DNA of 64,000 nucleotides from Glycera tridactyla. Lineage: Eukaryota. Below the pieces are notes generated by a model. That model was given only the letters and a program-made list of their open reading frames with translations, was not told where the DNA came from and searched no databases. The first letter of the stretch is position 1. Each line of letters starts with the position of its first letter. Shown here one piece after another: positions 2,927 through 36,910 of the stretch. The position numbers and the translations under genes were made by a program. The stretch is from NCBI GenBank assembly GCA_965644265.1, contig OZ286468.1:8370001-8434000 (forward strand), read 5' to 3'.

Positions 2927-4123
2927 CTTAATGTGGTGCCCCGTGAGATGTGAAGATAGTATTGCTAAAATGCTAGGCACGAGGACAATCTGCTGATGTC
3001 CCTCAATAATCTCCTTAATTTGGGTAATTTATCGCAGAAGTTGGAAACTGAAAACTTCCATTTTTGCATTCCCACACCTGGGAAATCATTCCCCTTCTGG
3101 CATAATATCAGGCAATATAACAGACATATATGGATACCAAAAGGTTGATTTATCTTATGAATTTAGCTATTGCTTAAAAAATTCAGTTTTTTCCCATCTT
3201 TTTAATATGCCCGCAATCACTGAAAACAGATGGTGAAATTCACTTCTGTATGAAAGTTATTTTGCTCACGAAGCAATGCCTAATAATAGAGCATCCCGGA
3301 ATTCAGAATAACTGGGTCAGTGGATATCATTGTTGACACATCGGGATTCATGCTCCCCAGATTCTGACCTCCTCAATGAGATGCACGTGACTCATGGTTG
3401 AGTCATGGTCGCACAAACATGAAGTCCTATGTTGGCCACTGTGACACTACAGTCACAAACATGATGCGTACTGATGAATACAACAGTGCAAATAATACAC
3501 TGTGGCACTACACTCACATTTTGTAATATGTGAGCTGGGACCCAGGCTTCACGGGGTAATCAGCAGTGCCCCAGACGTCCTATGTTGGCCCATGTGATCC
3601 TGTAAGCTACTATAAACCACAAAAAAATGACCATCCTGCTCTTGGGTCATTCATGTATTGATTCTACCACAAAGTGACTGCAGACAGTAGTGACTGTTCA
3701 GCTGCAGTATGTGGATCCACCTCAACTACATTCAGAGGTAGCTGCCCATTGGATGATTTCATTTGTGCCTGAACTGGTTTTAAATACTGAAAGTTTGGTG
3801 ACCCATGAACATAATTGTAACATGAACAAAACAGACACCCACCCTCAACTATCAGGGGGCTCGACAATGTCATCAAATACTAACTCACAACAAGCACACC
3901 ATGTGCATGATGATCGGATAATTCAAACTAATGGTATTTCAAAAAGATGGACTCATGACAGTTGCTGTTCCAAAGCAAAATCGATCTCCGAGATTTGATG
4001 TGACATAATATTCTGACTGATATTGACTGATATTGTGCAGTATTTACTCGCACACAGATGATTGATATGAAATTATTTGAGCTCATGTCTTGTGCCTTGT
4101 TGCCATCTCATTCCGTTTTACAG

Positions 4124-4214
4124 CATCACTCTCAACACGTTGACGTTGGCGGTTGAGAGTCCACATGTCTACACGCAGGCGGGTGTAGCCCTCTCGGTGA
4201 CTGGTATCGCACAG
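4124..4214 (+). CDS. FLOT1: FLOT1 exon 4 variant a (91 nt): [30 protein letters not shown]
   Basis: Acceptor ttccgttttacAG, donor cag|GTagac; 1 nt plus 30 stop-free codons; homologous to FLOT1 residues 41-70. Confidence 0.94.
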
Positions 4215-4757
4215 GTAGACACAAATCCTCCCTCGCTCCCTGAGCCCCTCTCTCAACTCACGCCGCTGCAGGCAGATGACGTGTCCATGTTCGGTCAATG
4301 TTGAAACATTGAATTGTTGTATTTCAATGTTGAAGCAGCTGTCTATCGCAGTTAGGTAGTCCTTTCAGTGTTCACTAGATGTCAGGACACCATTTGCCTG
4401 CAGGATTGTTGTTTGCGAAGCTGCGGTCAAAGCTCAGCATTCTGTCCAACAGAAGTTGTCAGAAACCATGCCATACCACGATGAGTGACTCCGTATTCGA
4501 AAAAATTGTTTTAATTTGATAAAACGAACAAAATTCCACCCTTGTTTAATTATCAGGAGCATCTTGCACTCTGTCATTCAATAAACTTGAAAATTTGCAT
4601 AGTTGCGATTTTGACAAATTAATAGAAATACTGTGGTATTGGTCATACCTGGCTACGGTTGGTGACAGGTGCTGTGGCTTTTGAGCCGTGAGTGGAGTGC
4701 TCGGCCCACCTCATTCTGAGTTTACCGCGCTGCGCCTGGCGTCCATACCTGCCAATC

Positions 4758-4799
4758 ATCATCATCGTCATCGTCCTCCTCCTCCTCCTCCTCCTCCTC
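4758..4799. repeat. (ATC)n-(CCT)n microsatellite
   Basis: Direct inspection. Confidence 0.9.
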
Positions 4800-7290
4800 G
4801 CCATACCCACTGCCGCTGCCCACTTGCTCCTGTCCTTGCTCATAGGCCATTGTGTGAACCTTCTCTCTCATCTCCGTAGAACTCTCATCTGGTTGTGACT
4901 CCTGGGGAAAGTCGGTTATCAGAATCCGCGATTTCTTCTCTTTCCAGACCCGCATTCAGTTACCTGTGATCGGCATCCCTTTCTGAAAGATTCCCAGACT
5001 TTTTTTACTGAAAGTTCCTTGTTGCCAAGTGGCCAGTGTATTGATGATCACAGAGATTTGGTCTCATATAACAGAATTGATCTGTATTTTGAGGTGGGAT
5101 TGCCAGATTTGACTACAGTAAACTTCTCCACCTTTTTACCTCCTTTCTTGGAAGGAGAATTTTGCGTTTCTGTAACCGACTTTTCCTGATATCTCATTCC
5201 ATTCATTACCACTTACACCTTCTGCTGCGTCAAGTTGTCTAAGCACTTGCGGTGCACTGACGCATAGTCTGTATTGGTGATCCATGAACCACGGTGCTCA
5301 CCGAGTGTGCATCCATCTCAAAATTCACATAGAATTAAAATCACCATTGAAATAGGTATGGGCTATGAATTTGGGAGAAATTTCGATGTTAAATATCATA
5401 AGCGGTTGTTCAAAGTATGCTGTATTGGAATGATGACAGACGAAGACAATGGCCTTCCAATGTGGCCCTGTCCGCCATAGCCCTACATGTTGGGCCATAC
5501 CATAATATTATGCACCATTTTCTCTTCGTCACAACCATGAAACCAGTCATTATGGAAATGAACTGCTTTGCATTATTTCGCATTCCCGTACATTCCATAG
5601 TCTGCTGGTGCCTAAACTGACCCAGGTGGTATCAGCGTACAACCCGTTTAGTTGTCGCATCGAGACATGTGCCCTTCATGGAATCACCGGCCAGTTAGCA
5701 CACTCTATCGCAGTCTTTTTTCCTTCAAGCTCAGTTCTCACTGGTTGTCATTCGATGACACACAAACACCACATTTTCAGATTGTGTTATCCAGAAGGTG
5801 AACCAGCATTTCATAATTCTTGCACTCAATTCTGTAGCACGGTTGAGAGAATGGTTTTATGAGGCGCCCAGTACTCCATCTGGTGATTCTCGGGAGAGAC
5901 ACAGACTGCGAAATATGTGGGAGCTGTGATAGGACATCCTTCACTTCTCACATCTACACCAACATCATTTAATTTTGAATTTGAATTTGAATTCAAATTT
6001 AATCTGTGTTATGTGGTAGTCGAAGAATGCAGTGGGTAAACTGGTTAACCGCTCTTACTCTTGAGTAAAATCCATGATTGGAGCCAACGCTCCCATATTA
6101 CACGCATTCTTCAGGTTCTAACATTATTCACTTTCCATACACTTCCTCCTTTCCCCCAACACCATCCCGTGCAGTCACGGGGAAAAACGCTGTAGCATTC
6201 CTGTGAACTTGATACTTGTACTTACATAGATCATTTCAAAATATCTAGTCAGGAAGTCATCCTGGACTGTGAATATAAAGATAGGCCTAGCAGCGATTAA
6301 AATACATGTTAGGCCGTGGTTTCATGGGCTGATTTTTTGCACCGATCATCGAGAAATTGCAGCCATCTGCTGGGTATGTGCCACTGAAAAGATGATCAAG
6401 ATGTGATTCAGGGAATGAATTTGGCTGGAGTTATAGTGCCATGCTCATTCTAAATGCATCCTGGGCTCAAATATCATGAGCAAAATCAGTATCTGCTCTG
6501 GAATTCAACATATTCCAGATTGACCATCAGTATCAGTTCACAGCAGTATTCTTGGCTGATATGGCACTTCCGAAGTTAGGAGATTTTGACGCTGTCTAAT
6601 GTTTTGCAAACACTCGTAAATGAGAAAGGACATCTTATACAGTGGTTGACCTTCTATTTCTGTTCATGATGCCCCCTTTCATCTTCCACCCATCCAGTGA
6701 CACGCGCATACATTAGCACACGGACACTTACATGCACAAACTAACTTGAAAACGATACTTGAGTTAGGGAAAATGCGCCTATTCCAATCCTCGTACCAGT
6801 AGATAGGATCACCTCTCAGGTTCTTTGCTAATAGTTATGAACGAGTAGGGACACTCCATGGACACTATCATATTGTGCATTAAAGTATCGTCTCATAGTA
6901 TCTGAAATTCTCGCCAGGTTGATAAATTGACCATCCTCGCTGGACTCATTGCTTCCATAGGCTGAGAAAGACAGTGTCACTATTACGATAATAATCTTAC
7001 TTATATTTTCATCATTTGAAAGTTTTGCGCTGATTGGAATCATCTCACGTGGCTTAATTTTTTTCAGATTGCTGCAGAGTTGTGGTTGCCTTTGAAATTA
7101 ATCAAGCCCTTATTTTGCTATTTGTACGCCACTAGCTGCCGTTAGCTGGATTGTGCTTGTCAGTCAAGTCTAGAATAAGTCGTTGTAGTTGTGTGAGGTT
7201 TGGAAACACGCGGTTGATGAGAGACAACCCGGCAGAACGTGCCTCGTTTTGGCGAGACACACTCAGCTGCAATCTCATTCCGTTTTTCAG

Positions 7291-7381
7291 CATCACTCTC
7301 AACACAATGACGCTGGCTGTTGAGACCACACACGTCTACACACAGATGGGCGTAGCACTGTCGGTCACGGGTATTGCGCAG
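7291..7381 (+). CDS. FLOT1: FLOT1 exon 4 variant b (91 nt): [30 protein letters not shown]
   Basis: Acceptor ttccgtttttcAG, donor cag|GTagac; 26/30 aa identical to 4a, with 12 synonymous and 4 non-synonymous codon differences. Confidence 0.94.
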
Positions 7382-9638
7382 GTAGACACATCACACCCAC
7401 CCTCCCACTATCCCAACCTGACTAAATCCTTGGAAACAAGTCAGCAAATGACATCACTGCCACCTTTAGATCAAGCACAATCTATAGTATTTCACACTAG
7501 ATTTCGTCTCGAAACAAAATACTTCAACATTGTAATAGTCACAAAGATTTCACGATATTTCGGAGGGTCCTATGCTGGAGTATTTGTGACAAATGTGTTA
7601 TAGACCAGAGCTGCAAGGAAGCAAATGTCACAACTAAAAATCATGCAGGATCACTTTTGAAGAAATATCACTTGGTCACCTGCATATAGAATATGAATGC
7701 ATTCACTTGGTTTGAATTATCTTCACAGCTGGATGCCTCAGGAATACCTCAGGGTGCATCATCACTTTTATTGGGCCTGTCCATGAATCTAGCCAATCAT
7801 TACTTGAAATTAATCTGCCGAGCAATCATTTTATTACGAATCACAATGTTCGATATGCTGATTATCCCCGCAATAGCACAACAGTTTCTCTCCAGATAGT
7901 AAACACCCACCGAATAGCGTTAATTTCTTATCATATTTGCCACCTATGAGACCTGCATATGCCGTTATCTCTTAAATAATGGCACATTCACGTTGTTCCA
8001 CTTGCACAAGGAGTTTGCAAGCTTCTAGAGTGGAGTTTGCTTTCCAAAGAGCACTCCTTGCCGGCGTAGAGATGTGACTGTAACTGTCCGTAAATCTCTT
8101 CTGTTTAATTACTAATCAATTATGAAAATGCTGAAGTTTCCTCAATTAATTCTCACTAAAATTTCACTGCTTACTCATCTCATAGGTCCGCCTTCATGAC
8201 AACAAATATCGTTACATTTGTATGCTTAAGTTTGATAAGTTATATTCATTCAATGAACTAAGTATTTAATTCCGACCTCTTTGCAGCATTCACCATTTCC
8301 CTCTTCTGGCACTGTAGCACCAGTATTCCAGTAGAGCGCCCACATTTAGTGCCTTGAATGCTCTTTGAATTTGGATCCGTTGCGAATCGTAAACCACAGC
8401 TAACGATTCTGTAAAGGCTCCATGTTCAGCGCCTGGTTGGGCTCACGCCATCATACAGTGAGAGTTGATGTCATTTGTTGACAGGGATGTTCTCTAAATG
8501 TGACCTAACAGCAGGGCATGCTGCTGTCTGAACGTCAATGCCAGGCTAAAACAGCGCAAACTCAAAATGGAGAATGCAAATTTGATATCTTGTTAGTATT
8601 TCTAGTCTAGTAAATAGTAAAAATTGAACTGAAGCTGTCGCAGATCAATCTCAACAATCTTATCGCCTTTTTTCTCCCGAAGTATAGGTTTTCCTTGTGC
8701 ATTCTTTATGTCAGGCTAACCTGAAACATGGAATTCACATAGAAAAAATCCAGGGTTTGCTCTTGAGCAGGGCCAAATTTCTGCTAGCTCTTGCATGCGG
8801 AGCACATAAAATGTGCCATCCAGTTTTACTGAGAGGTGGTGAAGACTATGAGCGTGTTAGCCTTGGTGTCTGGCTATAGCTACTCATTGTTCGGTACTTG
8901 TGTTAGCTCTCGTTGTTGTAGCTTAGCGCCATCTATGTCAGCGTGACAGACGCAGCAGTTGTGAGGTAGTAATGAGAACACAATCCTCCGCCATCTTGAC
9001 GCCAGGCCAGCAGAACGTCCGACATCACGACCCATGCCCGCTCGCCTTCCCCGCCCCCGCTGCTACCCTCCTCGCTGCTCTCACTCGCTCATGCCCGGTC
9101 AATGCTGATTGGGCCACCATTGCTCTGCTCATCCTCCCCCTTGCTCTCATTTGCATGTCAGTTTCCTCTGCTCGCTCACCATATCCTCACACCCGCTGCG
9201 CCAGTGTTAACTTAGCACCCGCTGCTCACTGATGCATTACATAAGAATGCAGTTACCCCGCTCAAACCGGAACCACCCGACACTCACCCAATCAAACCAT
9301 CCTCAAGAAGAAGCAAAGATCTTTATTGAAAACAAGGAATGAAGGACAAGTTGCACCTTTCTGATTGACACGTTTATGCTCAATGTGTGGTCTGGCTTTG
9401 GGCCATCCCACACGTCAGCTGTTGGTTCTGTGAACACAGGTGTTCAAGGGTTTACTCATCAATCAAGAAATAATCATGCAGTCTCCCTCGCTATGGAAAT
9501 CACTTGCAAGCAAACTTGTAAGATCTTGAAATGATACTTTAATTGAGTAATATATAAGACTGTTAGAAATTGCAATTTATACTAAGGAAACACATGTAGT
9601 CCCCTTTTTTGGTCTGCCGAACCCAGCGCATCTTGTGG

Positions 9639-9820
9639 TATAGTAAAACCTGTCTTGAGAGACCGCCCCAAATGCCGACAAAAAGTGGTCTCTCAAGACA
9701 GGTGGTCTCTCATTGGAGGTATATTTGACTATGTCAAATAGTGAAGAGCCGGTAAAAAGTGGTCTCCCATTAGAGGGTGGTCTCCCAAAAGAGGGGTCTC
9801 CCAAGACAGGTTTCACTGTA
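9639..9820. mobile_element. Tc1/mariner-type MITE (TA-CAGT...ACTG-TA family), 182 bp
   Basis: Terminal inverted repeats ta-tagtaaaacctgtcttg / caagacaggtttcactg-ta; internal GGTCTC repeats; near-identical copy at 40450. Confidence 0.8.
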
Positions 9821-11717
9821 CTGCCCGTTTCCGTCACTGTCTCATTTAGTGTTTTTCTGAGGAGAAGAGGATTCGAGCAGTGGTACAAGTTTGATTGTGT
9901 GTGCTACACGAGAGGGAGACTGCCAGTTTAATGAAACTGATATGTTTATAAGGTCCGCTAATCTCCCCATCTTTTCATTTCTACACGGTTATTTGGTAGT
10001 CGATTAGTATGAATGAATGACAGCGATCACCTGCATTTTGCATGAAGTTCAACTTTCTAATTCAAGGACAATTGCCTGCCTACTTCAAAATCACGAATCA
10101 TACCACAATGTAACCTTACTTACATGTAGGATCGTTATAGTGTTAAAGATGTTACCATGATATTGTTCCTTTGGAATATTTGCAGTTAAATGGTGCTCTC
10201 ACTTGTGCAAGATTTTACTTGCCTCTTTGTACACGCATCATTCAAATCTGTGATTGAGAAGTTTTTTGAGTTCCGGTCTGATGCTGGGAGGCAATTCAAA
10301 CATCAGGACCGTGCATATGAACATTCAAAATGCATTCTTGGTACTTGTATATTACCGGAGGACCATTTAAAAGATAATGTTGACAGTTCAAAGATAATGT
10401 TGACTGTTCAGTTATACCTCTTGTCAGATGATTACCCCAGTGATCACATGTATGCATGAAGATCACATGGGAAGGGCTTTTGCCTTTTCGACCCATTAAT
10501 GTTCGATAATTATGATATTTTTGCCCGTGGATGCTATCAACCAATAAGGTTGATCTCTGGTGGAGTTTTGACCTCCATGTGAATGTGGTGTGCCTGCGTG
10601 CAGCTTGGGCACAGTCACATGTTTATAACTGACTTCCAGAGCTATTGAGCTTGACTAACTAGGGCTTGACCCTCCGATCCTCAGCGCAATTGCCCCGTTC
10701 GCAAGTCGTCACTGAGGTATACTTGCCCGAACAGTGAATGTCCTTGCCTCACTTATTTTAGGTATATAACTATCCCTCAAATGAACTTGCCATTATGGCA
10801 TGTAGGCATGATAATCCACTTGCCTGAGAACAAATTTTACTCATCCCAGGCAGAGAGCAATGGTTGAATTCGAGCCCTGCTGATAGACACTGGCTTCAAA
10901 CCAGAACCAGCATTTCAAACTTACGGTTGCTGGTCATGAGAATTACTCAGGAAGCGGAGAGTAATTTTACCAAAATTCTGGCTTTACCTGCTCACTGCCA
11001 TACTAAATACAACTTTGTGTTTGAGGTGATCCTGCTTGACTACATTTTTTTTCCAGATTATGGCAGATGTTAACGATGATGGTTGACTGATTTCCCGACT
11101 TACTGTTCATTTTGAGGTAGACTTGTGTGGCCCCTCTCCCACTACTGTCTGACAACATTTCATGCACTGCTTACAGTTTCTGGGGGCTCCGCAACGGCGA
11201 CAGGGACGTCACTCATTTCTTAACTAACATCCAACGCTGCTGCCTTTCTAATAACTCGTGTTTTGCCGTTGACAGGAACAGTTTTGGACTGTAATGTACA
11301 ACTAACGATGCATGTTCTATGATTTATGCCACTCATCCAGTTCATTTTTTCATATTTCAAAGAGCACTGATTGTCTGGACAACTGAGGCACATTTTACCG
11401 TGAACAGTTCAATGCTAATTGACAAAATTACTTTGTAGTGCTTGCTATTCATTTCTTTGTGTTTTGGTAACATCCCCCTTATCCATAACTGTACTGTCAC
11501 TCTGTGTTGTGGAAAAGGAGTGTGCAAGTTGAAAACCAAGTGCCCATGAAAGTTGACTGTTTACAATCCAGTACATGTGGACTTATATTTCACATACTAA
11601 TATGACTTTCATTTCTAGCGGCATAGAATCTTGTATCTATATATCTCACCGCTGATGGTGGTTCCCATGGTTCACGAATGTCCCTTCCTATAATATTTCA
11701 CTGTCCAGGTGTTTGGT

Positions 11718-11956
11718 TCATATGCCATCCTCTTGGAGTTTGGTTGTCTTAGCGTCTAGTTGTGATGCAATGCTCTTGTTAGCTACTCCCACTTGACAAC
11801 CTTCCTGGTTCCACATCAGCTCGTCTTCAGGGTTTGTGATATTGAAATCTGCTTTCTTGTCCACCTCTGACTCGCTGGATGGTGATGCACTTCCATCATT
11901 TACCCATCCATCGTCTGGAAACGGTTCACTTTGCATCCCACTACAACAATCTGCTC
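11718..11956 (-). other. Possible terminal coding exon of a nested or decayed antisense gene
   Basis: Minus-strand acceptor cctttcatatcaacAG, then 2 nt plus 78 open codons (ADCCSGMQSEPFPDDGWVND...KLQEDGI) to TGA; no family recognised. Confidence 0.3.
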
Positions 11957-12825
11957 CTGTTGATATGAAAGGACGATGAGTGTCTGTGATTATAATCTCA
12001 ATTCACCTCCTGTTTGCGATCCAGTCGAACCTGACCAAAGGTGTGCCCACTTGTCTTTTTCAACCCCCAATTTTCAAAATGAGCACCCTGGAGTGATCTT
12101 TCAAAAAATGATAGATAATTCAATTCAATTATGGCACCCTGTTTCTGGCAGAATTTTTCTGAAAATGTAAGAAATTGCCAGAAATCTCGCTGGTGGATTC
12201 AGAAAATATACATTTTAGTATATGTTTCAGAAAATTCACCCATACTTCGGAAAATTCTGTGTCATTTCATCAACATCACTGTTTCTTGAAAATTGGTTGA
12301 ATATTGAGTGCATGGAAGAAGGGTTCTCGGCCTGAATGCCTCGCTAAAATGCTGTTATTATACTTGTTGGCATACATAATATAAACGATATAAAAATATG
12401 ATCCTCAGGTGGTTTTTATTCAGCGCAATGATTGATTATGAAAACACAAGTAAATCCCAGCACCAGTGTGCATTGAATGCAATCAATTACAAGTTGCAGC
12501 GCTGCATTGTCGGAGAAATCATTGATTTCACGATTGTGCCTACAAACTGCAATCATCTAGATATCGAAACGAATATCTAATAAAAAACCTCTTGACAATT
12601 TGTCCCAGCCTAATAGGATATTCGTGCCTACAAATTTTCACATTCAGGCATGGAACTCGTCCCTTCCACTGCCCATAAAATGTGGTCCTGTGATATCTTT
12701 CATGACTGCTGATTTGCTGTCCTCTATTCGCATCCGAGCTGTTGAACTGCCCACCCTATCATTAGTACTAGTTTCTGGGAATTACATCCCTTTTGAACTG
12801 TGTTGGTATCTCTTTGTTTGGATCG

Positions 12826-13209
12826 GTCAATCTGATGGTTACATGTAGAGGTCACATGGCGATCCGGTCAAACTGATGCTTACATGTAGAGGTCACATGA
12901 CGATCAGGTCAAAGTGAGTGGTTACATGTAGAGGTCACATGACGATCAGGTCAAACTGAGTGGTTACATGTAGAGGTCACATGGCGATTAGGTCAAACTG
13001 AGTGGTTACATGTAGAGGTCACATGAAGATCAGGTCAAACTGAGTGGTTACATGTAGAGGTCACATGACAATCAGGTCAAACTGATGGTTACATGTAGAG
13101 GTCACATGACAATCAGGTCAAACTGATGGTTACATGTAGAGGTCACATGGCGATCAGGTCAAACTGATGGTCACATGTAGAGGTCACATGGTGATCAGGT
13201 CAAACTGAG
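12826..13209. repeat. Minisatellite, about 9 x 41-42 bp
   Basis: Unit acatgtagaggtcacatg(g/a)cgatcaggtcaaactga(g)tggtt starting at 12841, 12882, 12924, 12966, 13008, 13050, 13091, 13132 and 13173. Confidence 0.95.
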
Positions 13210-13306
13210 ATCATGCTGCTGATGATTACATTTAGAGAGGTGAGATGGTGATTGGGTCGTAATAGTGGTGGTTACCTGTAGAATTTGAATAGTGATCCTA
13301 GTGGTG

Positions 13307-13361
13307 AGGTCATACTTAGGTCATACTGAGGTCATACTGAGGTCAGACTGTGGTCATACTG
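13307..13361. repeat. 5 x 11-bp tandem repeat (AGGTCAtactg)
   Basis: aggtcatactt aggtcatactg aggtcatactg aggtcagactg tggtcatactg. Confidence 0.9.
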
Positions 13362-14500
13362 ATGATGCCCTGAGAAGCATCATTCTTCATCTTAACTGTG
13401 TCACAAAAGACGAGGACCCCGTTTCTGTTATGAAACGTTAGCAAATAACATTAGTTACAACTGGATAATCTGTTAGGGAGAGTTCCAAGCATTGTTCCCG
13501 CCCCATTGGATACGAGTTCTACCTTCCAATTCTCTGTCTCGTTTGTGACAGCTTGTCTTTGCTTCATTCTCGGTCGCGCTCCAGTTTTTCAAAGGTGGCA
13601 TTAATTAGATTTTCATTTCATACCCTGATTGAAAATTTCTTCACCGTATTCTGTTCAATACAAAGAAGTTGTTGGTTGAATTGCAGAGCTTCTGTCTCAT
13701 TTTCATCACGACAAGTGAGCTTTTATATTCTGAATGGAGATCTGGGCAGTTGAGAGTTTCTGCTATGAATAATCCTGATCAGTAGAGGGTACTTGACTGA
13801 TTGCTCTGTTGTCTTGTTTGTTCTTGGTACTTGATGGCTTCTCCCACTCACATTGCCATGACATTCTCTGCTACTTTGGAGTTTCATACAGCCTAGATTT
13901 CTACCCACTGACTTGACATTTTTGATGACTGTCTGACTTCCAGCACTCTCAGTTCTTTACCAACTGCTATGCGATATCATGATGACGATTACATTCATTC
14001 TTGGATCTTGCTGTCCATGCTTGAGACTTTAGTTCCAGCCTTCTGTTAAAACATTATAGTAATACCTTTCTTTCAGTGAAAACATTTCAGCCACAATCAT
14101 TGTTCATTTGTTTCTCACTGACACTGTTGCCCACTGACCTTGTATATACTCACTCTGCCCAGTTGTATTATGCCATTGCGCAGTCATAATACAGACTATT
14201 ATGTCTGTTTGATGTTGTAACATAAACCAATATTCTCGTGTTTTCTACTGACTAATGCGGAAGACATTGAATTGAGAGTTGCAAAGCTTGACAAATATGT
14301 GAACTCTCAGAAAATGGCATATTTCATTCCTAGCAGATGACTCAACATCTGCCTCATCATAAGAAAGCATGATCATATTCAAACCTGGAATCATGAATTT
14401 TGTCCATCACTCACGACTAGTTGGTTGTCTTTCACTGTCCGACTTTCTGATTAACACTCACAGATTCACATGAAATTCACCCAGTGTTGTGTTCTTATAT

Positions 14501-14683
14501 CAGTGATGCAAGTTTTCAGGTAATTTCCTGAATTCAGGAAATTTGTCATGCAATTCCAAATCCAAAAGTTTCTGGAATCAGATTGAAAGTTTCAAATCTG
14601 GTGGTTTTTGAAGTATAGGGAGGTAGTTTCAGGAAATTTGGTCAGGTTTCAGGAAATTCTATCTTAGTGCACTTGCATCACTG
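14501..14683. mobile_element. MITE with perfect 13-bp TIR CAGTGATGCAAGT (hAT-like)
   Basis: cagtgatgcaagt / acttgcatcactg; internal ttcaggaaatt repeats; related sequence at ~26588-26738 and 41097-41588. No clear 8-bp TSD. Confidence 0.65.
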
Positions 14684-15074
14684 TGATATATCATTGTCGA
14701 ATCTCAGATATCCCTCGACTCACTCAATGAATACCGGCGAATCATTGTCACTGATTCTTTGTGAGCATTTCCTTTATGTATTTTGGAAACCACAGATGAA
14801 ATAAGCTGCATGCAGACTGCCATTCTGGTGACATCCCTTGTCTTTGGCCAGTCAGTAACTCCATCCTGACTACTGCCTTGGTTGACCACTCCGTTAGTGG
14901 TCATTGTTACGGTGTACATACCAGCACCACCTCCCTAACCATCTGTGAGTGGAACAAGAACTGTGACAGATGTTGATGGAACATTCCTCAAACCATATTA
15001 TCCTAGGATAACTAGTGACATTCCTTCAAATTTTTGGCTGCGAATCATTTCACCTGTTATGATTACATACTGAG

Positions 15075-15093
15075 GACCACCAGATGGCGCTGC
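15075..15093 (+). promoter_or_regulatory. CTCF-like motif about 125 bp upstream of exon 4c
   Basis: ACCACCAGATGGCGCTG closely matches the CTCF core CCACCAG(G/A)(G/T)GGCGC. Confidence 0.55.
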
Positions 15094-15216
15094 CTGCCAC
15101 TGGTACCTTCGGGCATTGCAAGGGATAAGCAGCTCTGGTGTGAAATGATCACCGAAGGTATTCAGAATTTCCGGTCTAAGACGTAGATAAATCTGAACAT
15201 GATTGGTTGTTTTCAG

Positions 15217-15307
15217 GATTACTCTTAATACGATGACTTTGATGGTTGAATCCCCCCACGTCTACACCCAGATGGGCGTCTCCATCTCGGTAACGGGTAT
15301 CGCCCAG
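15217..15307 (+). CDS. FLOT1: FLOT1 exon 4 variant c (91 nt): [30 protein letters not shown]
   Basis: Acceptor ggttgttttcAG, donor cag|GTacga; intact frame; absent from the supplied ORF track. Confidence 0.93.
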
Positions 15308-17437
15308 GTACGACGACGAGTGTCTCGCTCCACTACTGGAAACGACAAATGCATTTCTTAAAACGAACGACAAGTTAGCTAACTGTTCGCATGCCTGAAT
15401 GATAGTTTACTAAACAACTTACAAAAACTAAAAGACATGAAGCAGTTGGTCCAGTGTATTTCCTAATTCATTGATTTTTCATCATTCTATTTTTTACGGA
15501 TTTGCTTGATTGACATGATCGTCTATTTTTTGACCTGGTCGAACCTCATGACTGGTAGCTTGACATTTCTAGAGGCTTACCCCATTCCTGCACAGTGTTC
15601 GCACCCTTCAGTATCCCGATGAATTCATCCCAATACTCGAGGACATTCATGAACATGACTGACATGCTATTGACCTGCCAAGAATTCTCGATATTCACAC
15701 TTTGAAGATGTGCTCACATGTCAAGCAACCGCTCACACCTGATTTGGTTATATACTTATGATTCAGAAGTTAAGCTTGCATGCCATTTCATTCGATTCCA
15801 TTCAATTTCATTCTCAGAGTAGGATAAAGCAGACATTACGTAGTCAACTAGTCAGTACCCCTGATAGAGCTGATTCGATTCAACTATTTGAAGAATTGCC
15901 AATTGCCATTATATCACACTCATTTCTTGGTTGATCTTTTCATTAGGTTAGACAGAGACCATTCCAGTTTTAGATGATGAGAGGAGCTTCATTTATTTGA
16001 AAACTTTCATCAGATAAAATAGTCATCTTTCACTTTTTGGAGTGTATAGAGGTAGTGATACTCCTATTTCACAATTCATGATTAAAATGAGTAAAAATTA
16101 TTCTGACTGCATTTGTATTTGTCTCAGAAAGTTAGCTAGGATCTTCTACTTCATTACTTCTTCCAACTAGATAGAAATTGCTTGCTCAGTTTTTCCGCAT
16201 GGTAGTCATCATCTCGCAGTTTACTGAATTGAGGTAGGATCAGTCACTCCTCATTTTTATGAGAGCAGAACATTTTTATTCTCCTCAAGATGAAGTAATC
16301 TTGCAAGATAAAGATAAGGGAAATATTCTTTTCACTTTCTTCACTTCCTGACAGGCTGCTGGGCCCTTGCGTCCTTCAAACTAAAAATGTCATGAGCCGT
16401 AATACAAAATAAATGGCCTCTCCCTATCTATCAATAGTTTGAGATGACAAACCGGGCCCAGTTGACCCATGGACTTCGATGGGCCAGAAAGGCAAAAATG
16501 GGGTTGAGGGCCCATGTACACAAACAATATGAAGCTCTGTCTGATAACAGACTTGAGGAATTGGCCATGAATGCTGTGATGCTTCATTCAGTAAAGGCCC
16601 AGATCTAACCTGGTGATCTGCCATTTCATTTGTGTGAACATTTTGCAGCAATAGCAATTGCCATGGTTCATTCCCCAAATTATTGACCAACCTTCTAAAT
16701 TTGTGCATTCTTATGTCCCTGCACCTATCCAGCAGATATCATAGACCTGTATACTCATGCCATGTCATCAAAAAAAGCCAAGTGCAATAATTGAGCTTTA
16801 CAAAAAGCAGATTTTTTCATCAGAGGCCTATTTAGATTGGAAATATTTGGTGTACTTGAGCCCATTAAGGTGGAAGAAGCATGCATGTTTAAACAACATC
16901 GAGAGTGATGTTAGTTATTTGATGCTGGCCGAGTGGCATTCACTAGCATCGTCGTCGTCGTATAGCAGCTAAGGCATCTTTGCCGCTGCCGTCGGCCGCT
17001 GCCATCATTCATCCCGGTGATGGGATTATTGATCCATGAACGATGATGAACGCATGCCGCTTCCGATCTTCCTCATCCTAGCGCCACCTATGAGAGCAGC
17101 CTGCCATCACACACTACCGCACCACACCTTCTTGGTGCTCGGAACTCCCCGGGTTCATGTATCAACTACTACCTCGAAATATGGCATAATTACGGGAAGA
17201 TTAATTTACATGCATTTTAGAAAGGTCATTCTTGAACAATATTGAGGACTATTTCTGTGGGCCCAAAATGTAGTTTGGAGATGGATGTTGGTGATGTGTT
17301 TGTGGATGTTCCTGTTGGTCCATCACTGCCACCAGCTGATGTCACGTCCTCACTCATACACTGCAGCATTGACACTAAATCCAGACCAATCATGACATGG
17401 ATCAGCTGGATTTTATCTGTGTTTCGACATAGAAAAT

Positions 17438-17727
17438 CAGTGTCCAATCTAGAAATCGACCTCAGTTGGGGGAACGCCCCCCTCTCTGAAAATAGGGAGG
17501 GGGATTTTTCCAGGCAATGACATGATGTTTCAAATAAATGAAAGAAATGAGCTTGGTAGTGTGTCCAGGTTAAAACAACTACCAGGAAACAGAATTGACA
17601 ACGTCATCTAAATGCACCAATTTGGCTATCTGAAGGGGTGAAATGCACCCCTCCATCCGGAAACTAGGGGCGTCCTGTCACGTTTGTGGGGCCATTCACC
17701 CCAATACCCCCGCTGGATTAGACACTG
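17438..17727. mobile_element. MITE-like element with 15-bp imperfect TIR
   Basis: cagtgtccaatctag / ctggattagacactg (13/15). Confidence 0.45.
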
Positions 17728-18602
17728 GAAAATGAGCTACATTTCAGCAGCACCAAAGTGAAACAGATCACAGGAGATTCCAACTGCTGGGGAGTGCCCT
17801 TGAAAAAACACATTTTGCCCCCCCCCCCCAAAAAAAAAATGTTGTTAAAAATATACCCACTCATCATCGGCTCAGGATTTTTATGTCAGGAGGTTTTAGG
17901 TCCACTGCCATTTCACTCTCATCTCTCCAACGTCCACTGAATTGGTCTCTCTATCTCACGCACTCACAATCACACTTGCTCTTAGTAGATTAAGGTCGTG
18001 AGTTAAGGTCGTGAGTTATCCTCTCAGTCACTTCAGGCAGTCATATTAGATTAGAAGTCACACATGGCTATTTCTCCTCTCACTCCTATTCTCTTGGCTG
18101 TCACAAATTGCACAGGCTTGGTTAGGGATGTATCCATATCTGCATCAAAACCTTTTGGAAAAAAGAAACAAATTTACTCAACTTTGCATAGACACTGCAC
18201 CACAACTGCTTGCAAGTTTTGAAGCATTTCGGATTCATTGGAAACATGACTTTTGTTCTTGAAAGCATTTGCATAGTTGCACCATACGATCCCATGTAGA
18301 ATAATACTGGACTGTCAAACTGGTCTCGTTGAGTTTTCTTCGGTAATCTTGGCTAAAGTGCACAAAAAGTACTTTGTTATTTGTATCATGATATCTATCC
18401 AACCACATGATTATCTATTTTTCATTCCAACCTGTTATTTCTCTTGCATCTTACATTTTATGGCCATCCAGTTTCAGTCTCAAATAATCCTGCCTGGGTC
18501 GCAGTGAAGTTAAGCCCTACTCAGTCAATCAATCAAGTTTCATGGCCACCAATTCTGAGTCTCAAATGATCCTGCCCAGATTGGAGGGACATTGAGCCCT
18601 AC

Positions 18603-18632
<30 letters not shown>
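18603..18632. repeat. (TCAA)n microsatellite
   Basis: Direct inspection. Confidence 0.9.
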
Positions 18633-18634
<2 letters not shown>

Positions 18635-21390
18635 CCACTAACTCTGAGCAAATGGCATAGTAATAATTTATGAGCATGTTATAGTAGGCCCAAAACATCA
18701 TTGGAATGTGGTATTTCAGCCTGAATATCACAAATGCTATTTTGTTTCAATGAGGCTTGAAGTCATATCTATTAATCCCAGGTTTAGGGCGACTGCTGTT
18801 GCTCAAGATAATGGATACATATGATTTCAAACGTAGAGAGAGGACAGTTATTTCAGGGAGTCATAAGCTATCATAAACAAACTAATTATTACCACTGTTT
18901 GAGGAAAGAAAGGCCAAGGACAGTCCATTTTTCTTGAATAAAAAACTCAACAAGGCGTCATGTTTGATTGTGCAGAATTATTTGTTTGTCGGATTGTATG
19001 GCTGTATACGTATTGTCTGAATATTGCACCATTTTGCATTCTCGAACCCCATTTTCCTGTCACATGTATCGTTGGTCACGTGTCACAGTTCCGTGTCGTG
19101 TTTGCACCACATGCATCCATGTTCTTGACATGTGTGTCAGTCAGTCTCATTGTCTTTAGGAGAACCCCCGTCTTTTCCCAGATCAGTTGTCTCAGCTTTC
19201 ACCCTCCCAGTTAGAATTATTGGTAGCTAAGCGATGAAAACGATACTCAGCTTTAATACATCAGCTTCAATGCGACATGAATATTGTTTGTCAAAAGGGG
19301 AAGGAATCCTATTCGGTATTGAATTCAAATACTGATGGCTGGAAATATGGCATGCTCAGAACTCGGAGAATATAGAGGAGCAGGACACTCTCCTGTTTAC
19401 CCAAGGGCTGAGAATTGCTACATTAGTAACAACCTGATTTTCTGTTCTCATACATTGGTCAATCTGATCACTGTACATGCCTTTAGTCAAACCTGCCTCA
19501 ATGACCACCGAGGCCTGAAAGTTAGGTACCTCAGAATGTCTTCCAGAATTTCTCTTGGACTAAATTTACCCGTTCCATGGTAGCCTACAGATCCCTTTTT
19601 AGGATGACCAAGGGAAACGTTTAGAGGCACGTTACACTGATTTCTCTGGCATGGTGATTAGAGAGACGTATGCCTTGACAGGACGGTGTGACAGACTGAA
19701 GTACCCGATCTCACGCTGATTGGGGTCACCACAGGGTCACTACACATAGAGGGAACTAGACGACCTGACAGCCACGCATTCTCATCACTCAAGAATCTTT
19801 TCCGAGAGTTTTGTGTGTTTCCCCATCGCAAATTGCAAGAATTGAACTTTGATATCTTGCTTCATCCTTATAGATACTTGCTATTTCCAATCTCGCTATT
19901 ACTTTCCTCTCCAACTTGGCATATATTTGGATATGTGCACAGAACTCTAATATTATTGAATTTCTTCGCTGAGTGGAGCACTGGAATATTTGTACACGGT
20001 TGTCTTCTTTTTGAATGAATTGCAATTCAACTTGGCTTTGGTGTTGCCTTGCCTCCTTCAATACATATGTACTTCAGCCTTATCATGATAAAACCTACAT
20101 GGTTTAGAGTACTTGTGCAGGAAATGCTCCATGAAACTAGTTGACTAATGAAGCATCAGGATCAGCTTCAAATAAAAACATCACGATAGCTTTTCTGTTT
20201 ACTGGACACCATATCCCGTTTACCACTCCCTCCCTGACTATGTATATGTGTGCTGGAGACGCAAATACTCTGTACCGCAAATACTCTGTACCGCATGTAG
20301 ACTGTTTTTATTTTCATAGCTACCGACTGGTGATGATTTCACAGTTAATTCCAGTATTTTATGTGGAATAGCATCATCTGCATTCATACTCTTCGACTAC
20401 CTGTAACCGTGTTGATTTTGGTGTATATCATAACTGTTTTTGTTTTACAACAATGTGCCCATATTATATGCGGGTATATTAAAATTTGTGGGAAGGTTTA
20501 TGTAAGTAGCTCAAGATGATGTTAAAGCTTCTGATGCGCTGAAGATTGGGAAGATGTGGCTGTCAAAAGTGGTGATATTTGCAAATGTTGCCACCTCTTG
20601 GGGGCCCACATATGCTCTCAATTCCACTGTACAGGACCTATAAAGGCAAAGGCTTGAGTTTCTCCTATACTTACCTACACCTCGTGAGCCTCGTGACTCC
20701 CCAAGCTCTCCCACTGGAGCAGCATGACATATATCGATAGAGCACTCAATGATGTATCCACAAACACACGTAAACATCAAATTTATCAGCAAGTGTGATG
20801 AATTTGAAGGGATTATGTGTGCTTGACAGAATGAAGCCTGACTCAAAATCTTGGCGGTTTGAACTTTCAACTCCGAGATAGAAGAATATTGCTCTGGAAG
20901 TGTTTTCTCTTTTGACACCGATTACATTATAAATCATAGCAGTGCTGATATATGTCATCTTGTGGAGTAGATCTTTCAGTGCGACGTACTCCTTGTTATA
21001 CATAATCCTTATGCTTAAGTTCTTTGCATCATGGATGTCAAGGTACTCACTCAATTACTTTTTCTTATCAACTTATAGCAACGAAATCCAATTTTGAGAT
21101 CTATTCTTGGCCAAAATAGCATGAAAGCAACTGCATCCTTGATGTATATCTGTGTACGTGTGTGCGTGTGTGAGCGTGTATGGCGACCAAGCTGCATGTC
21201 ATTGCCATGTCGTTAGGTGGAATGAGCGAGGCCGCTGCCACAAACACCGCCGCTGCCACTCTCTGGTAGTGCCGCTCCTCCTGTGTGTTGTCGTCCTGTG
21301 CTACGTATACTATATATCGCTGCTGCTGTCTTTGGTCTGTCCGTTGTTGTTGTGGCTGTTGTTGTAGTTTGACCGCTGCTCTGTTTACAG

Positions 21391-21481
21391 GATCTCCCTG
21401 AACACAATGACACTGACCGTCGAATCACCCCAGGTGTATACTCAGTTAGGTGTTGCCATCTCTGTCACTGGCATAGCACAG
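21391..21481 (+). CDS. FLOT1: FLOT1 exon 4 variant d (91 nt): [30 protein letters not shown]
   Basis: Acceptor ctctgtttacAG, consensus donor cag|GTaagc; starts ISLNT like human FLOT1. Confidence 0.95.
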
Positions 21482-31300: not shown

Positions 31301-34300
31301 CATTGATTCCATCCTGATTCGGGCCAGTTACTGACATGGTGATGGTTTTTATAGCTACCGTAATTTGTTTTGTACAGGATCCAGCTGCACATGCCCATTA
31401 TCCATAGAGTTGATACCAATGGTGAATTTTGATTTCAAATGAAGTGCCTTTTACCCGGGTATAGAACCTCCAACTGGCATTACTTAGGATTATCTGTATC
31501 CCTTAAAAAAAAAACACCATTTGTATCACCATTGTGATAGCATTGAAGATAGGATGGATGTGTGTCTGGCAGGTGCAACTGGGACTTTGTATGGGCAGGG
31601 TGCTATGACCCAAGTACATGGGACTCAATCATTTTATGATATTGTCAAGATGTATTGGAAAGTGGAGAAATGATCCTGCTAAATTCAGACATTTTTCATA
31701 CAAAGATATTCAGATAATCCTCCCAGTGTTCGGTTGTATACCACAGCAGCTTCACCTTTGGCCTTTGACCTATATCTAGAGCAGGTGTATTTAAGTGTCC
31801 CCACATTTAATCTTCATATTTGATGTAACACACACACACACCTGAGCCTAATCCTGGCTTATACCCCGAGGACACAAGAGTTCATTCATCAGTCAGGCCT
31901 GTCTTGTAGCCTGGTGGGCTGCTCTATCAAATATCAATAAGGACACTCGAACTGCATTCTACCTAAAATTCAGGGGATGCACATAGATGTGTGTGAACTC
32001 TACACTAATGGTTGCCCTCCTGGCACAGGCTGGCAGATTTGCTTTCAGAGCAGGTGATTTTATCGATCTGCCTGCCCGATGGGCGGGTACTCACTCAACC
32101 ATCATTTAAGCCATGAATTTATGCATGCGGGCTGGTGAAAATGACAGGGAGGGCAGGTGAATATCACACTTCACCTGCTGGAAGGACAGATGAAGAAAAA
32201 AGTTAATGTAGAGCCCTGGCACGATGCAGAACATGCAGCTTCTACAGATGAGGAACATATGGCATAGTCAATCCCGTGGGTTGATACATGCCTTCAAACC
32301 TCAACCAAATAGCTGACCAATCAAATAGCTAACCAGATTTTATCCAATGTCAAGGTCTTGAGGTAGGGGATGAATAGTCCCAATTGTTCTACCCTGCGAT
32401 AGTGCACTTAAGTCCCTTTATGGGTAGTGCTGAGGACATGATCATCTTGAAAAATGGGGAATCCTAAACATTATTCCCTCATCGGTAGGAGTGTTAGGAG
32501 TTGGAATCTGAGTTGTTATGATCTTTAGAAAACTGAATGTCCACAACATGGAACCCTTTTCCGATATTATACTAGACCCTAGCAGGCCATGGAAAATATG
32601 CCTGAATAATAATGAATCTATACAAGCAAGCTGAAGGTCGGGAAAACGGAAAGCCGCAGGTGGCTGATTGGACGGAGAGATGGATATCAAACAAATGCAG
32701 CAAGGTGATCTTAGCACAAGATGGATGGGAGAGGTTGGAAGGATGGCAAGTACAGGGACGGTTTCTCTGAAAATATAGTTCCACCTCGTAATGAAGCCTG
32801 ATCTCAGAAATGCTCTCTGCTGAGCGGACCTGCTCCCATTTACGGGGCTCCTGTATATTAGTGTAATGAGCCACTGGCCAATTTGGCATTCTTGCATTTA
32901 TTTGGTCCTAATTAGATTACGGCTATCCATAATAAGCCGGAATGAGGTGGCTGGTATGGAGAGACACGCAGGCTCTGTATCGGCCTGCTGTGGTATACGA
33001 TCGGAAAACGGGCCGCAAATGGGTCCCGTGGGATATCTCAAATGACTTCAACATTCTCGTTTTAACGAGGATCTCAGATCAATCTAATTCCGAGAGTTGC
33101 TGATGCTGATTTTGAGGCTTATCTAAACTTGTTAAGTGGTGCATGTCATTTGCTTCTTCGATAACATTTCCTAATCAACCCTTCTCATTCCTGGGTTTAT
33201 ATTAAGTCCTCATTTTTCCTATCAAAATATAAAATTGTGCATTTGATTTGGAGTTGATATCATATTGACTCAAAGACAGGGAACTTTCCCCATCAGAGTT
33301 AGTTCTGAAATTGAGTGTTTAAGATCTGTTTAGAATGATGTGCTGTTTTCTCAGTATGGATATTCTCTAGGATTATTAGATCATATATTCCTACATGTTT
33401 GTTTACATATTTTTGAAGATTGTGTATTTATAGATTATTACTTGTTTAAAGTTGAGACGTAGCTGCTTGATATTCATGATCAATTCTTGTAAATGATATG
33501 TATCTAAGTTAAGTTGAAATATTATAATTGAATAGTGAATAATGAAAGTCTGAGATTATTTTGAGATCAATTAACAGTGCTATCAATAATGAGATTTTTG
33601 ACACTTATTGAAACATTTTTCAAGTATATTTATCTGAGAAATAATGAGAATGTTTTTTGTGAAATTTGAATATATGTATTTGTTATTTGTTATGCATATT
33701 TGATGACTTGTCACCATTTTATGACACTGTTTACTTGTCTTTTTTTGTTGACTTTTTCAGATTTCCATGTTCTGTACTCCGTTGGATTAATGATATAGAG
33801 GTCAACAACATCATTCCTGGAATGCAAAACATATCAAAAAGAGAGAGCCTGTGTTTGGACCATCTTTCTCATATGTTGACTTCAGTGGTCAGATCTCAAA
33901 ATGCTAAGACAGACTTTCAACCATATTGTCTTTCATATATTACGAATAGGCCAGAATAGGCCAGAATAGGCCAGAGCATATCATCAGTGAAATTGATTCA
34001 CTATGGAGATTCTGGATTCACTTACCACACCTATGCTGAAGACATTTTGTCAGCATCAATAGATATTTATCCAAGTCCAGTGGGGTACAGAATGGCCTGT
34101 ATATGCTCGAATACTCCAGCTAAGCGAGTATGTACGTATGTATTTGTGGCCTTTTGACTTCACTCTTTCACGTGTATTCTCCAGCCGTAATCCTCCTCTG
34201 GAGACACTTGATTTACTCAACAAAATTCCTTTGAACGGAAGAATACCCTGCTTCTGTATTTGAGCATATACATCATGTTTCATGTCTCCAAATGTGTCCC

Positions 34301-35159
34301 TGCATGAATCGAAGTGACTGAGTATCTGAATCAGATTGATTGATTGAATAATTGACTGACTGTGCTGGATGAATCAATGAAATGTCTTGAGTCTTGTCTT
34401 GTGAGATGAATAAAAGTGGGCAATATTCAGCCTTCAACTCTATACCACAACCCAATCATAGTTTTGACAAGGAAATAGCAAATATGTTCTGAAATTTGAA
34501 CAAATCGGCTGCAATAAAGGAGGTCAACTGGGATCTCAGTCACCTGCACGGCCATGTGAACACGAGCGATTATCAAACATTGCCGGAAGATCATTAGACG
34601 TTGTCGATGTCCTGAAATAGAAGCGGCTTCCGATTGTTTCATCGGCTGGTTGCTTATAGAGAGAAGCCTGCCAGCCAGCATATGGAAGCGAGCAAATATG
34701 GCGGGACTCCTTCACTAAGCATGAGAAACATCTCAAGAAGGACCCAGAAGCTGTCAATTGCACTTGGGTTGTGTCATTGAGTGACATGGTCAAGCACGTG
34801 TTGCATTTAGTGAAATGGTCCTCAGATTATGATCAGGCCCAGTGTGTATCAGTAACGATGGCTGTGCTAAGGATAATATCACAGATTGGGGATCGGGTCG
34901 CCTTCATTAATTCAGTCCCAAACTTGAGCTTGAACCCTGTGCTTTCCACTTGTGTACAGTGACCTTGCCCTACCACCAGTATATTACCCAGGATTCCTGT
35001 GTGGCACTAATTCTTGTTGACAAATGTGGGGCAGGCAGGTGAACTGCGACTTTCACTCGTGCCAAATAAACAATTTTGAAAAAATTACTAAATATTTCTT
35101 TACGAGGTTGTCTCACCTTACCTGATGCTAGGTGGAATTAACTTACAATATTGCCAGTC

Positions 35160-35292
35160 TGTGTTTGTGTGTGTGTGTGGGGGGGGGGGGTATGTGTCTG
35201 TATGTGTATATTTATGTCTCAGTTTGTCTGTTTGTGTCTATATGTTTGTCTGTCTGTCTGTGTTGGGCCATATCATATCTGTCCAACTATCC

Positions 35293-35324
<32 letters not shown>

Positions 35325-35400
35325 GTGCATGCCTGCTGTGGGTATGTGTACATGTGGGTGTGTGTGTGCACGCATATGTGCGTGTGTATTTGTGTGAGCG
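35160..35400. repeat. (TG)n-rich tract just upstream of exon 5a
   Basis: Long GT dinucleotide runs ending about 95 nt before the 5a acceptor. Confidence 0.9.
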
Positions 35401-35493: not shown

Positions 35494-35637
35494 GTGAAGA
35501 TTCAGGGTGGTCACGAGGACATGTTGGCTGCTGCTTGCCAAATGTTCATGGGCAAACCCGAGGAGGAGATTCGTCAGATTGCCACGGAAACGCTTGAAGG
35601 CCATCAGAGGGCCATCATGGGCAACATGACAGTCGAG
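35494..35637 (+). CDS. FLOT1: FLOT1 exon 5 variant a (144 nt): [48 protein letters not shown]
   Basis: Acceptor ttgacccatttAG, donor gag|GTagcc; 48 codons, phase 0-0; homologous to FLOT1 residues 71-118. Confidence 0.95.
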
Positions 35638-36766: not shown

Positions 36767-36910
36767 GTTAGAATACAAGGCCAAAGTGTGGAAATGCTTG
36801 AGACGGCCTGTCAACAGTTCCTCGGCAAGACCGAGACCGAGATTCGTCGCATCGCCCTCGAAACGCTAGAAGGCCACCAGAGGGCCATCATGGGAAATAT
36901 GACCGTAGAG
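36767..36910 (+). CDS. FLOT1: FLOT1 exon 5 variant b (144 nt): [48 protein letters not shown]
   Basis: Acceptor gtacgtttcAG, donor gag|GTagtg; 35/48 aa identical to 5a; absent from the ORF track. Confidence 0.94.

Follow-up and report, generated by a model that had tools for sequence, protein, structure and literature searches.

One of the four textbook mechanisms by which exons exclude one another relies on an exon length that is not divisible by three, together with nonsense-mediated decay (NMD) that clears the products of double inclusion and of double skipping. Clusters of more than two tandem homologous exons with long introns are found in the insect Dscam gene (exons 4, 6 and 9), as well as in the 14-3-3 xi and Mhc genes (PMC6071210, PMC9013439), where a single docking site pairs, in competing RNA structures, with selectors that lie next to the individual variants. 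Human flotillin-1 has been solved as part of a 44-mer cage (9bq2, 9l3g; PMC11260169, PMC13000311), and the solved chains have one sequence for residues 41-70, which form part of the SPFH1 core. In this paper, we have analysed a stretch of 64,000 nucleotides from the annelid worm Glycera tridactyla (assembly GCA_965644265.1 of 2.04 Gb; contig OZ286468.1, here C28:8370001-8434000; ~40% G+C), which is called the window throughout and lies within a gene of the same family. This gene offers four sequences for the segment of residues 41-70, encoded by four tandem duplicates of flotillin-1 exon 4 (4a to 4d), which very probably form a cluster of mutually exclusive exons, one being used in each mRNA with NMD as a backstop.

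The nearest counterparts of this cluster are found in molluscs and a brachiopod. Invertebrate flotillin-1 entries from two protein searches were cut at the exon borders and compared, and equal-length isoforms that differ solely in the 30-residue exon-4 segment were found to be annotated in several species, as follows.

Lingula anatina: 3 exon-4 variants, RefSeq isoforms
Haliotis rufescens: 5 exon-4 variants, RefSeq isoforms
Mytilus: 3 exon-4 variants, RefSeq isoforms
Sinanodonta woodiana: 3 exon-4 variants, GenBank gene models
Bradybaena similaris: 2 exon-4 variants

In L. anatina, H. rufescens and H. cracherodii, Mytilus and Sinanodonta, it is the exon for residues 41-70 (human numbering) that is swapped while the isoform length stays equal, and the variation in the mollusc and brachiopod sets falls on the same exon positions as in the worm, i.e. 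9, 13-14, 18-19 and 22-23. The exon-7 segment is also swapped in molluscs, and the exon-3 segment in Lingula. Furthermore, the genome of the sea slug Plakobranchus contains two tandem 91-nt exon-4 copies bounded by AG and GT, which lie 1.8 kb apart and are followed by two exon-7 copies (at 17653-17748 and 19046-19141 of the stretch compared). The worm, on the other hand, belongs to a different phylum and has its own sequence types, the mollusc-type 'TK[HQ]G' variant being absent from its four copies; in addition, its exon 5 is doubled and its first coding exon comes in three alternative forms. Full-text literature searches that combined flotillin with mutual exclusion or tandem duplication of exons gave no paper on the subject. 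The exon set of the worm is thus real but not of a new kind, since such sets are already annotated in molluscs and a brachiopod, and the mechanism is an ordinary one.

The four exon-4 copies are located in the window as follows.

4124-4214, forward strand: exon 4a, 91 nt, bounded by AG and GT, with the weak 5' splice site GTAGAC; matches flotillin-1 residues 41-70
7291-7381, forward strand: exon 4b, 91 nt, bounded by AG and GT, with the weak 5' splice site GTAGAC
15217-15307, forward strand: exon 4c, 91 nt, bounded by AG and GT, with the weak 5' splice site GTACGA
21391-21481, forward strand: exon 4d, 91 nt, bounded by AG and GT, with the consensus-like 5' splice site GTAAGC

Each copy consists of one codon-completing nucleotide followed by 30 codons, and the phase is equal in all four. 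A tblastn search of the window with the 30-residue peptide of 4a returned four strong matches (E-values of 5e-16 to 1e-12, with 80-87% amino-acid identity to the query) and a next one with an E-value of 0.47; no degenerate extra copies of exon 4 were found in the window. The same four-member family (D2) was recovered by a repeat search of the window. The peptide of 4d has 29 of its 30 residues as in the canonical exon of the nearest relatives. In a phmmer search of the PDB, the 4a peptide matched flotillin-1 residues 41-70 (9bq2, 9l3g) with an E-value of 1.5e-5, and flotillin-2 with an E-value of 1. Full-length flotillin-1 relatives were then obtained by searching the whole library with the exon at 47364-47483, which is present in one copy, and the gene was mapped by tblastn of full-length homologues over the window and its surroundings on the same contig (30 kb on the upstream and 40 kb on the downstream side). 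The exons recovered are collinear with flotillin-1 homologues across residues 1-420, and the nearest proteins carry PF01145 and PF15975; the best database match to the window exons is ~91% identical (174 of 192 residues). Judged by this likeness, the gene is a flotillin-1 with SPFH / Band 7 and Flot domains, closer to flotillin-1 than to flotillin-2. A Pfam scan of the single exons gave nothing above the cut-off, the exons being too short for Pfam.

The copies were compared by Nei-Gojobori counts in all six pairs. The proportion of changed sites was 0.08-0.14 at nonsynonymous positions (pN) and 0.54-0.91 at synonymous ones (pS), so that synonymous sites are near or at saturation, and the ratio of nonsynonymous to synonymous divergence (dN/dS) was ~0.07-0.12. 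These counts indicate that all four copies are old and under purifying selection. That the open frame, the exact length and the splice sites have been kept despite this age argues for selection on every copy. The original prediction of four 91-nt copies with AG/GT borders has thus been borne out by tblastn, splice-site inspection and the repeat search alike, and the likeness of the copies goes far past what chance would give.

Copies 4a and 4b are the most alike pair (73 of 91 nt) and have in common a Leu at position 23, which is rare in other animals (1 of their 106 distinct variants); they are best supported as sisters. Their likeness extends into the splice signals on both sides. The window has the 15-mer ATCTCATTCCGTTTT at 4105 and 7272 and nowhere else, and the nonamer GTAGACACA follows both exons. 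The corresponding elements are listed below.

4105-4123, forward strand: 3' splice-site element of 4a, with the putative branch point CTCAT, a pyrimidine tract and AG, common to 4b
7272-7290, forward strand: 3' splice-site element of 4b, matching the element ahead of 4a
4215-4223, forward strand: 5' splice-site nonamer GTAGACACA after 4a, with a C-rich stretch next to it downstream
7382-7390, forward strand: 5' splice-site nonamer GTAGACACA after 4b, with a C-rich stretch next to it downstream

In these flanks (19 nt before and 9 nt after the exon), 31 of 32 nt are identical, and the likeness ends abruptly outside them, whereas within the exons 13 of ~24 synonymous sites have changed, so that dS is already ~1. 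This difference points to selection on the splice signals of 4a and 4b, or on a shared regulator site, and not to recency. The flanks common to 4a and 4b had been noticed in the original prediction and are real; the conclusion drawn from them, that the two are the youngest pair of a readable duplication history, holds as regards their sisterhood, but with a dS of ~1 and flanks that appear to be under selection the pair can hardly be called young. The 90-nt coding parts of the four exons were placed in a maximum-likelihood tree with the segment in an intronless gene copy (see below) and the exon of the tubeworm Ridgeia; this tree was fully unresolved, and therefore no order of duplication is claimed beyond the sister pair.

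The reading frame was followed through the combinations of copies, for which the neighbouring exons are needed.

-3339 to -3264, forward strand: exon 3, which ends in CG
35494-35637, forward strand: exon 5a, 144 nt, which holds the stop for any copy followed by 4d and for full skipping
36767-36910, forward strand: exon 5b, 144 nt, a paralogue of 5a

As 91 nt is not a multiple of three, a second copy is read in a shifted frame. When 4b comes second, it is read for ten codons as HHSQHNDAGC and then stops (TGT TGA); 4c in this place gives DYS and stops after three codons (TCT TAA). There is no stop within 4d as the second copy, but the shifted frame runs on to GCT TGA in 5a, or, if 4d is joined to 5b, to a stop at the first complete codon of 5b. 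When all copies are skipped, the CG at the end of exon 3 and the GTGA at the start of exon 5a make CGG TGA, again a stop. Inclusion of three copies restores the frame arithmetically, yet a stop is met, because any set of three has 4b or 4c in second place. Hence zero, two, three or four copies of exon 4 lead to a premature stop every time, and the stops previously listed for the double inclusions were found to be exact. That the frameshift exclusion is 'built-in', as had also been put forward, is another matter, since the length of 91 nt is found in the single exon 4 of Ridgeia and in both Plakobranchus copies. The length is, by this comparison, ancestral and not an evolved safeguard, and the frameshift comes free with the duplication. 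Moreover, the exon-5 and exon-7 pairs of the same gene (144 nt and 96 nt) are multiples of three and need some other means of choosing one member, and the skipping of 4d after an upstream copy would need active control, since its 5' splice site is consensus-like and those of 4a-4c are weak. NMD is thus probably the backstop and not the selector. The locus resembles the textbook case of NMD-backed exclusion in its 91-nt exon and in the stops met in every wrong combination, and differs from it in that the length was inherited and that frame-neutral exon clusters stand in the same gene.

An independent line of evidence comes from an intronless copy of the gene. When the worm's own genome was searched with the closest full-length flotillin-1 relative as the query, an intronless and uninterrupted flotillin-1 frame of 428 codons with Band_7 and Flot domains was found at C18:56182814-56184097. 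It is collinear with all exons and contains exactly one exon-4 segment, which has A9, V10, A19 and L23 as in 4a, and T12 as in 4b. The residues A9, A19 and L23, which link the intronless copy with the 4a/4b pair, are rare, being found in 6, 1 and 1 of the 106 distinct variants, respectively. In the other duplicated exons it is 5b-like (109 of 144 nt, vs 96 of 144 to 5a) and 7b-like (75 of 96 nt, vs 66 of 96 to 7a). Against the parent exons its pS is 0.65 and its pN 0.12, with a dN/dS of ~0.09; no database protein is more than 74% identical to it. It is probably an old functional retrogene, and the simplest reading is that it arose from an mRNA with a single 4a-type exon, or one of the 4a/4b ancestor. 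The retrogene with its one 4a-type segment would therefore be indirect but independent evidence both for single inclusion and for the use of a non-canonical copy, and it can stand in for the missing RNA data.

The variable residues of the exon were placed on the AlphaFold model of the closest full-length relative (mean predicted local distance difference test, pLDDT, of 74.6, and ~78-86 over the exon region). In this model the N-terminus has five strands, of which the third ends within exon 4; the exon then goes on to strand 4 (48-58) and, after a turn at 59-63, to strand 5 (64-75). The original prediction had listed positions 9, 12-14, 19 and 22-23 as variable, to which positions 2 (T/T/T/S in 4a/4b/4c/4d) and 6 (L/M/M/M), omitted there, have to be added. 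On the model, positions 12-14, 19 and 22-23 lie around the tip of the SPFH1 hairpin formed by beta4 and beta5, with position 9 further down strand 4. It has been reported that SPFH1 is half embedded in the membrane, and that the SPFH1 domains of neighbouring flotillin-1 and flotillin-2 touch via less conserved loops on the five-stranded core (PMC13000311, PMC11260169). The recurrence of variable positions was counted in six clusters from six species, this worm included.

Exon position 19: varies in 6 of 6 clusters
Exon positions 13 and 14: vary in 5 of 6 clusters each
Exon positions 2, 9, 18 and 23: vary in 4 of 6 clusters each

This recurrent variation round one hairpin tip fits the earlier idea of a tuned surface, and it is plausible, as far as the model goes, that the variable residues tune one SPFH region.

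Taken together, we propose the following mechanism. Tandem duplication of flotillin-1 exon 4 would have produced the four-exon cluster, and each mRNA most likely carries one copy. The copy chosen would supply the beta4-turn-beta5 hairpin of the membrane-embedded, ring-forming SPFH1, the variants differing chiefly round its tip. Which copy is taken is probably decided through the use of the splice sites, where 4a-4c present weak 5' sites and 4a and 4b a common 3' element, and 4d, with its consensus-like sites and canonical peptide, is probably the default. Mistakes that leave zero, two, three or four copies in the mRNA would meet an early stop and be removable by NMD.

Several points weigh against this proposal. 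A look-up of sequencing runs for positions 3000-8999 of the window listed no RNA run, and the animal's own proteins were absent among the matches of three protein searches. Ridgeia, the sole annelid genome compared, has a single exon 4, in short introns. The assignment of the retrogene segment to the 4a type rests on a few rare residues, its nucleotide identity being 64 of 90 to 4a vs 61 of 90 to 4b and 61 of 90 to 4d. Finally, the positions that vary between the copies are those least constrained across the flotillin-1 family generally.

Other explanations of the cluster were weighed against these data. The first is that splicing is permissive, and that NMD alone enforces single inclusion by destroying frequent double-inclusion products. 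All multiple inclusions as well as complete skipping do stop well upstream of the last exon junction, as this explanation demands. However, the 91-nt length is ancestral and is present also where the exon is single, the 144-nt and 96-nt pairs of the same gene need another mechanism, and the splice sites of 4d are strong, so that most mRNAs with 4a-4c would, without repression, also take 4d and be wasted. We therefore consider NMD as the sole means of exclusion unlikely.

The second is that competing RNA structures select the exon, one docking site pairing with a selector beside each variant as in the insect genes mentioned above. A search for such a site (inverted-repeat scan, stem search and scored control) found none that is complementary to all four variants, in which respect the locus differs from the Dscam, 14-3-3 xi and Mhc clusters. 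It did give one weak candidate.

32933-32953, forward strand: weak candidate pairing element in the intron before 5a, with complementarity to the region round the 3' splice site of 4a, and less of it to that of 4b

This element can pair with 4100-4120 (4a) over 21 nt and with 7269-7286 (4b) over 18 nt, as a docking site would. Against this, the search found no partner beside 4c or 4d; the score for 4a is at about the 99th percentile of 1500 random intron windows, which is not significant over eight flanks, and that for 4b is ordinary; and 4a and 4b are not independent cases, their flanks being copies of each other. Selection by a docking site is thus quite unlikely here. Long (CA)n tracts at about -950 to -735 in intron 3 were also seen to be complementary to (TG)n tracts at 35155-35372 upstream of 5a, with predicted duplexes that reach about -32 kcal/mol. 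Pairing of these tracts could place the entire cluster in a loop; they could also bind CA-repeat proteins, or be meaningless simple repeats.

The third is that the canonical 4d alone is used, and that 4a-4c, in part or entirely, are left over from old duplications and out of use. In its favour, 4d alone is near-identical (29/30) to the exon found in the nearest relatives, one copy suffices for Ridgeia, and no RNA run was listed, as said. Relics with a dS of ~1 or more, however, would lose the open frame, the length, the AG/GT borders and a dN/dS of ~0.1; the splice-signal flanks of 4a and 4b are better conserved than their synonymous sites; the retrogene bears a 4a-type segment; and several variants are transcribed in other phyla. 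We regard this explanation as very unlikely. Two further mechanisms were rejected outright, namely steric hindrance, as the introns between the copies measure 3076, 7835 and 6083 nt, and U2/U12 incompatibility, as all 5' sites are GTAGAC, GTACGA or GTAAGC and none has the TATCCT core of the U12-type 5' splice-site consensus. A cluster of four mutually exclusive exons with NMD as its backstop is thus the reading that we retain.

The gene as a whole runs on the forward strand from ~23 kb upstream of the window to ~4.5 kb past its end. Its remaining exons are listed below in window coordinates.

~-23025, -8270 and -5146, forward strand: exon 2, in three alternative versions, any of which can serve as the first coding exon, having an ATG of its own and a GT donor
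47364-47483, forward strand: exon 6, 120 nt, single copy
54129-54224, forward strand: exon 7a, 96 nt
55017-55112, forward strand: exon 7b, 96 nt, a paralogue of 7a
64353-68477, forward strand: exons 8-11, past the window end

There are thus four places with alternatives in the gene, which allow up to 3 x 4 x 2 x 2 = 48 combinations. The alternative first coding exons are homologous to one another; two of them begin with MGC or MGCC, a start of the myristoylation/palmitoylation type that is flotillin-2-like, and one with MPFFYTC, which is flotillin-1-like. It may be, then, that not only the hairpin but also the membrane anchor is switched in this gene. The exon-7 pair re-codes the start of the long coiled-coil helix. 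As for exon 5, Ridgeia also has two copies of it (15136-15279 and 16798-16941 of the stretch compared), and since it has this pair but one exon 4, the exon-5 duplication may predate the exon-4 expansion or be independent of it.

Little else was found in the introns of the cluster. There are just two open reading frames of at least 110 aa, one of which spans exon 4b, and the other of which has 135 aa and lies on the minus strand; no convincing nested gene was found there. No Rfam families were found in the window. A tandem array of ~10 units of 41-42 nt lies at 12825-13250 in the intron between 4b and 4c, and a run of N of 583 bases at 43489-44071 in the intron between 5b and 6. In addition, a flotillin-2-like gene, ~50% identical to the flotillin-1 query, is located on the minus strand at C18:78290445-78295878. 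It contains no duplicated segments, and its equivalent of exons 4 and 5 is one open block.

Flotillins have so far been treated as a fixed pair of flotillin-1 and flotillin-2 that builds one type of 44-mer cage. The locus described here, together with isoform sets that have so far passed without comment in public annotation, shows that exon swapping alters the membrane-inserted SPFH1 of flotillin-1 in many invertebrates. We tentatively raise the possibility that flotillin-1 is a combinatorially diversified cage subunit in this worm and in lophotrochozoans, and that the exon-4 expansions of annelids, brachiopods and molluscs are independent events at one and the same exon, each of which diversified the same positions. 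If this were true, the worm gene would provide up to 48 isoforms with most of their variety in the membrane-embedded SPFH1, and different hairpin tips would give cages that differ in lipid, partner or flotillin-2 compatibility. As the cage structures have been solved, the variable hairpin tip can be placed in them, and isoform-specific assembly or lipid binding is open to experiment.

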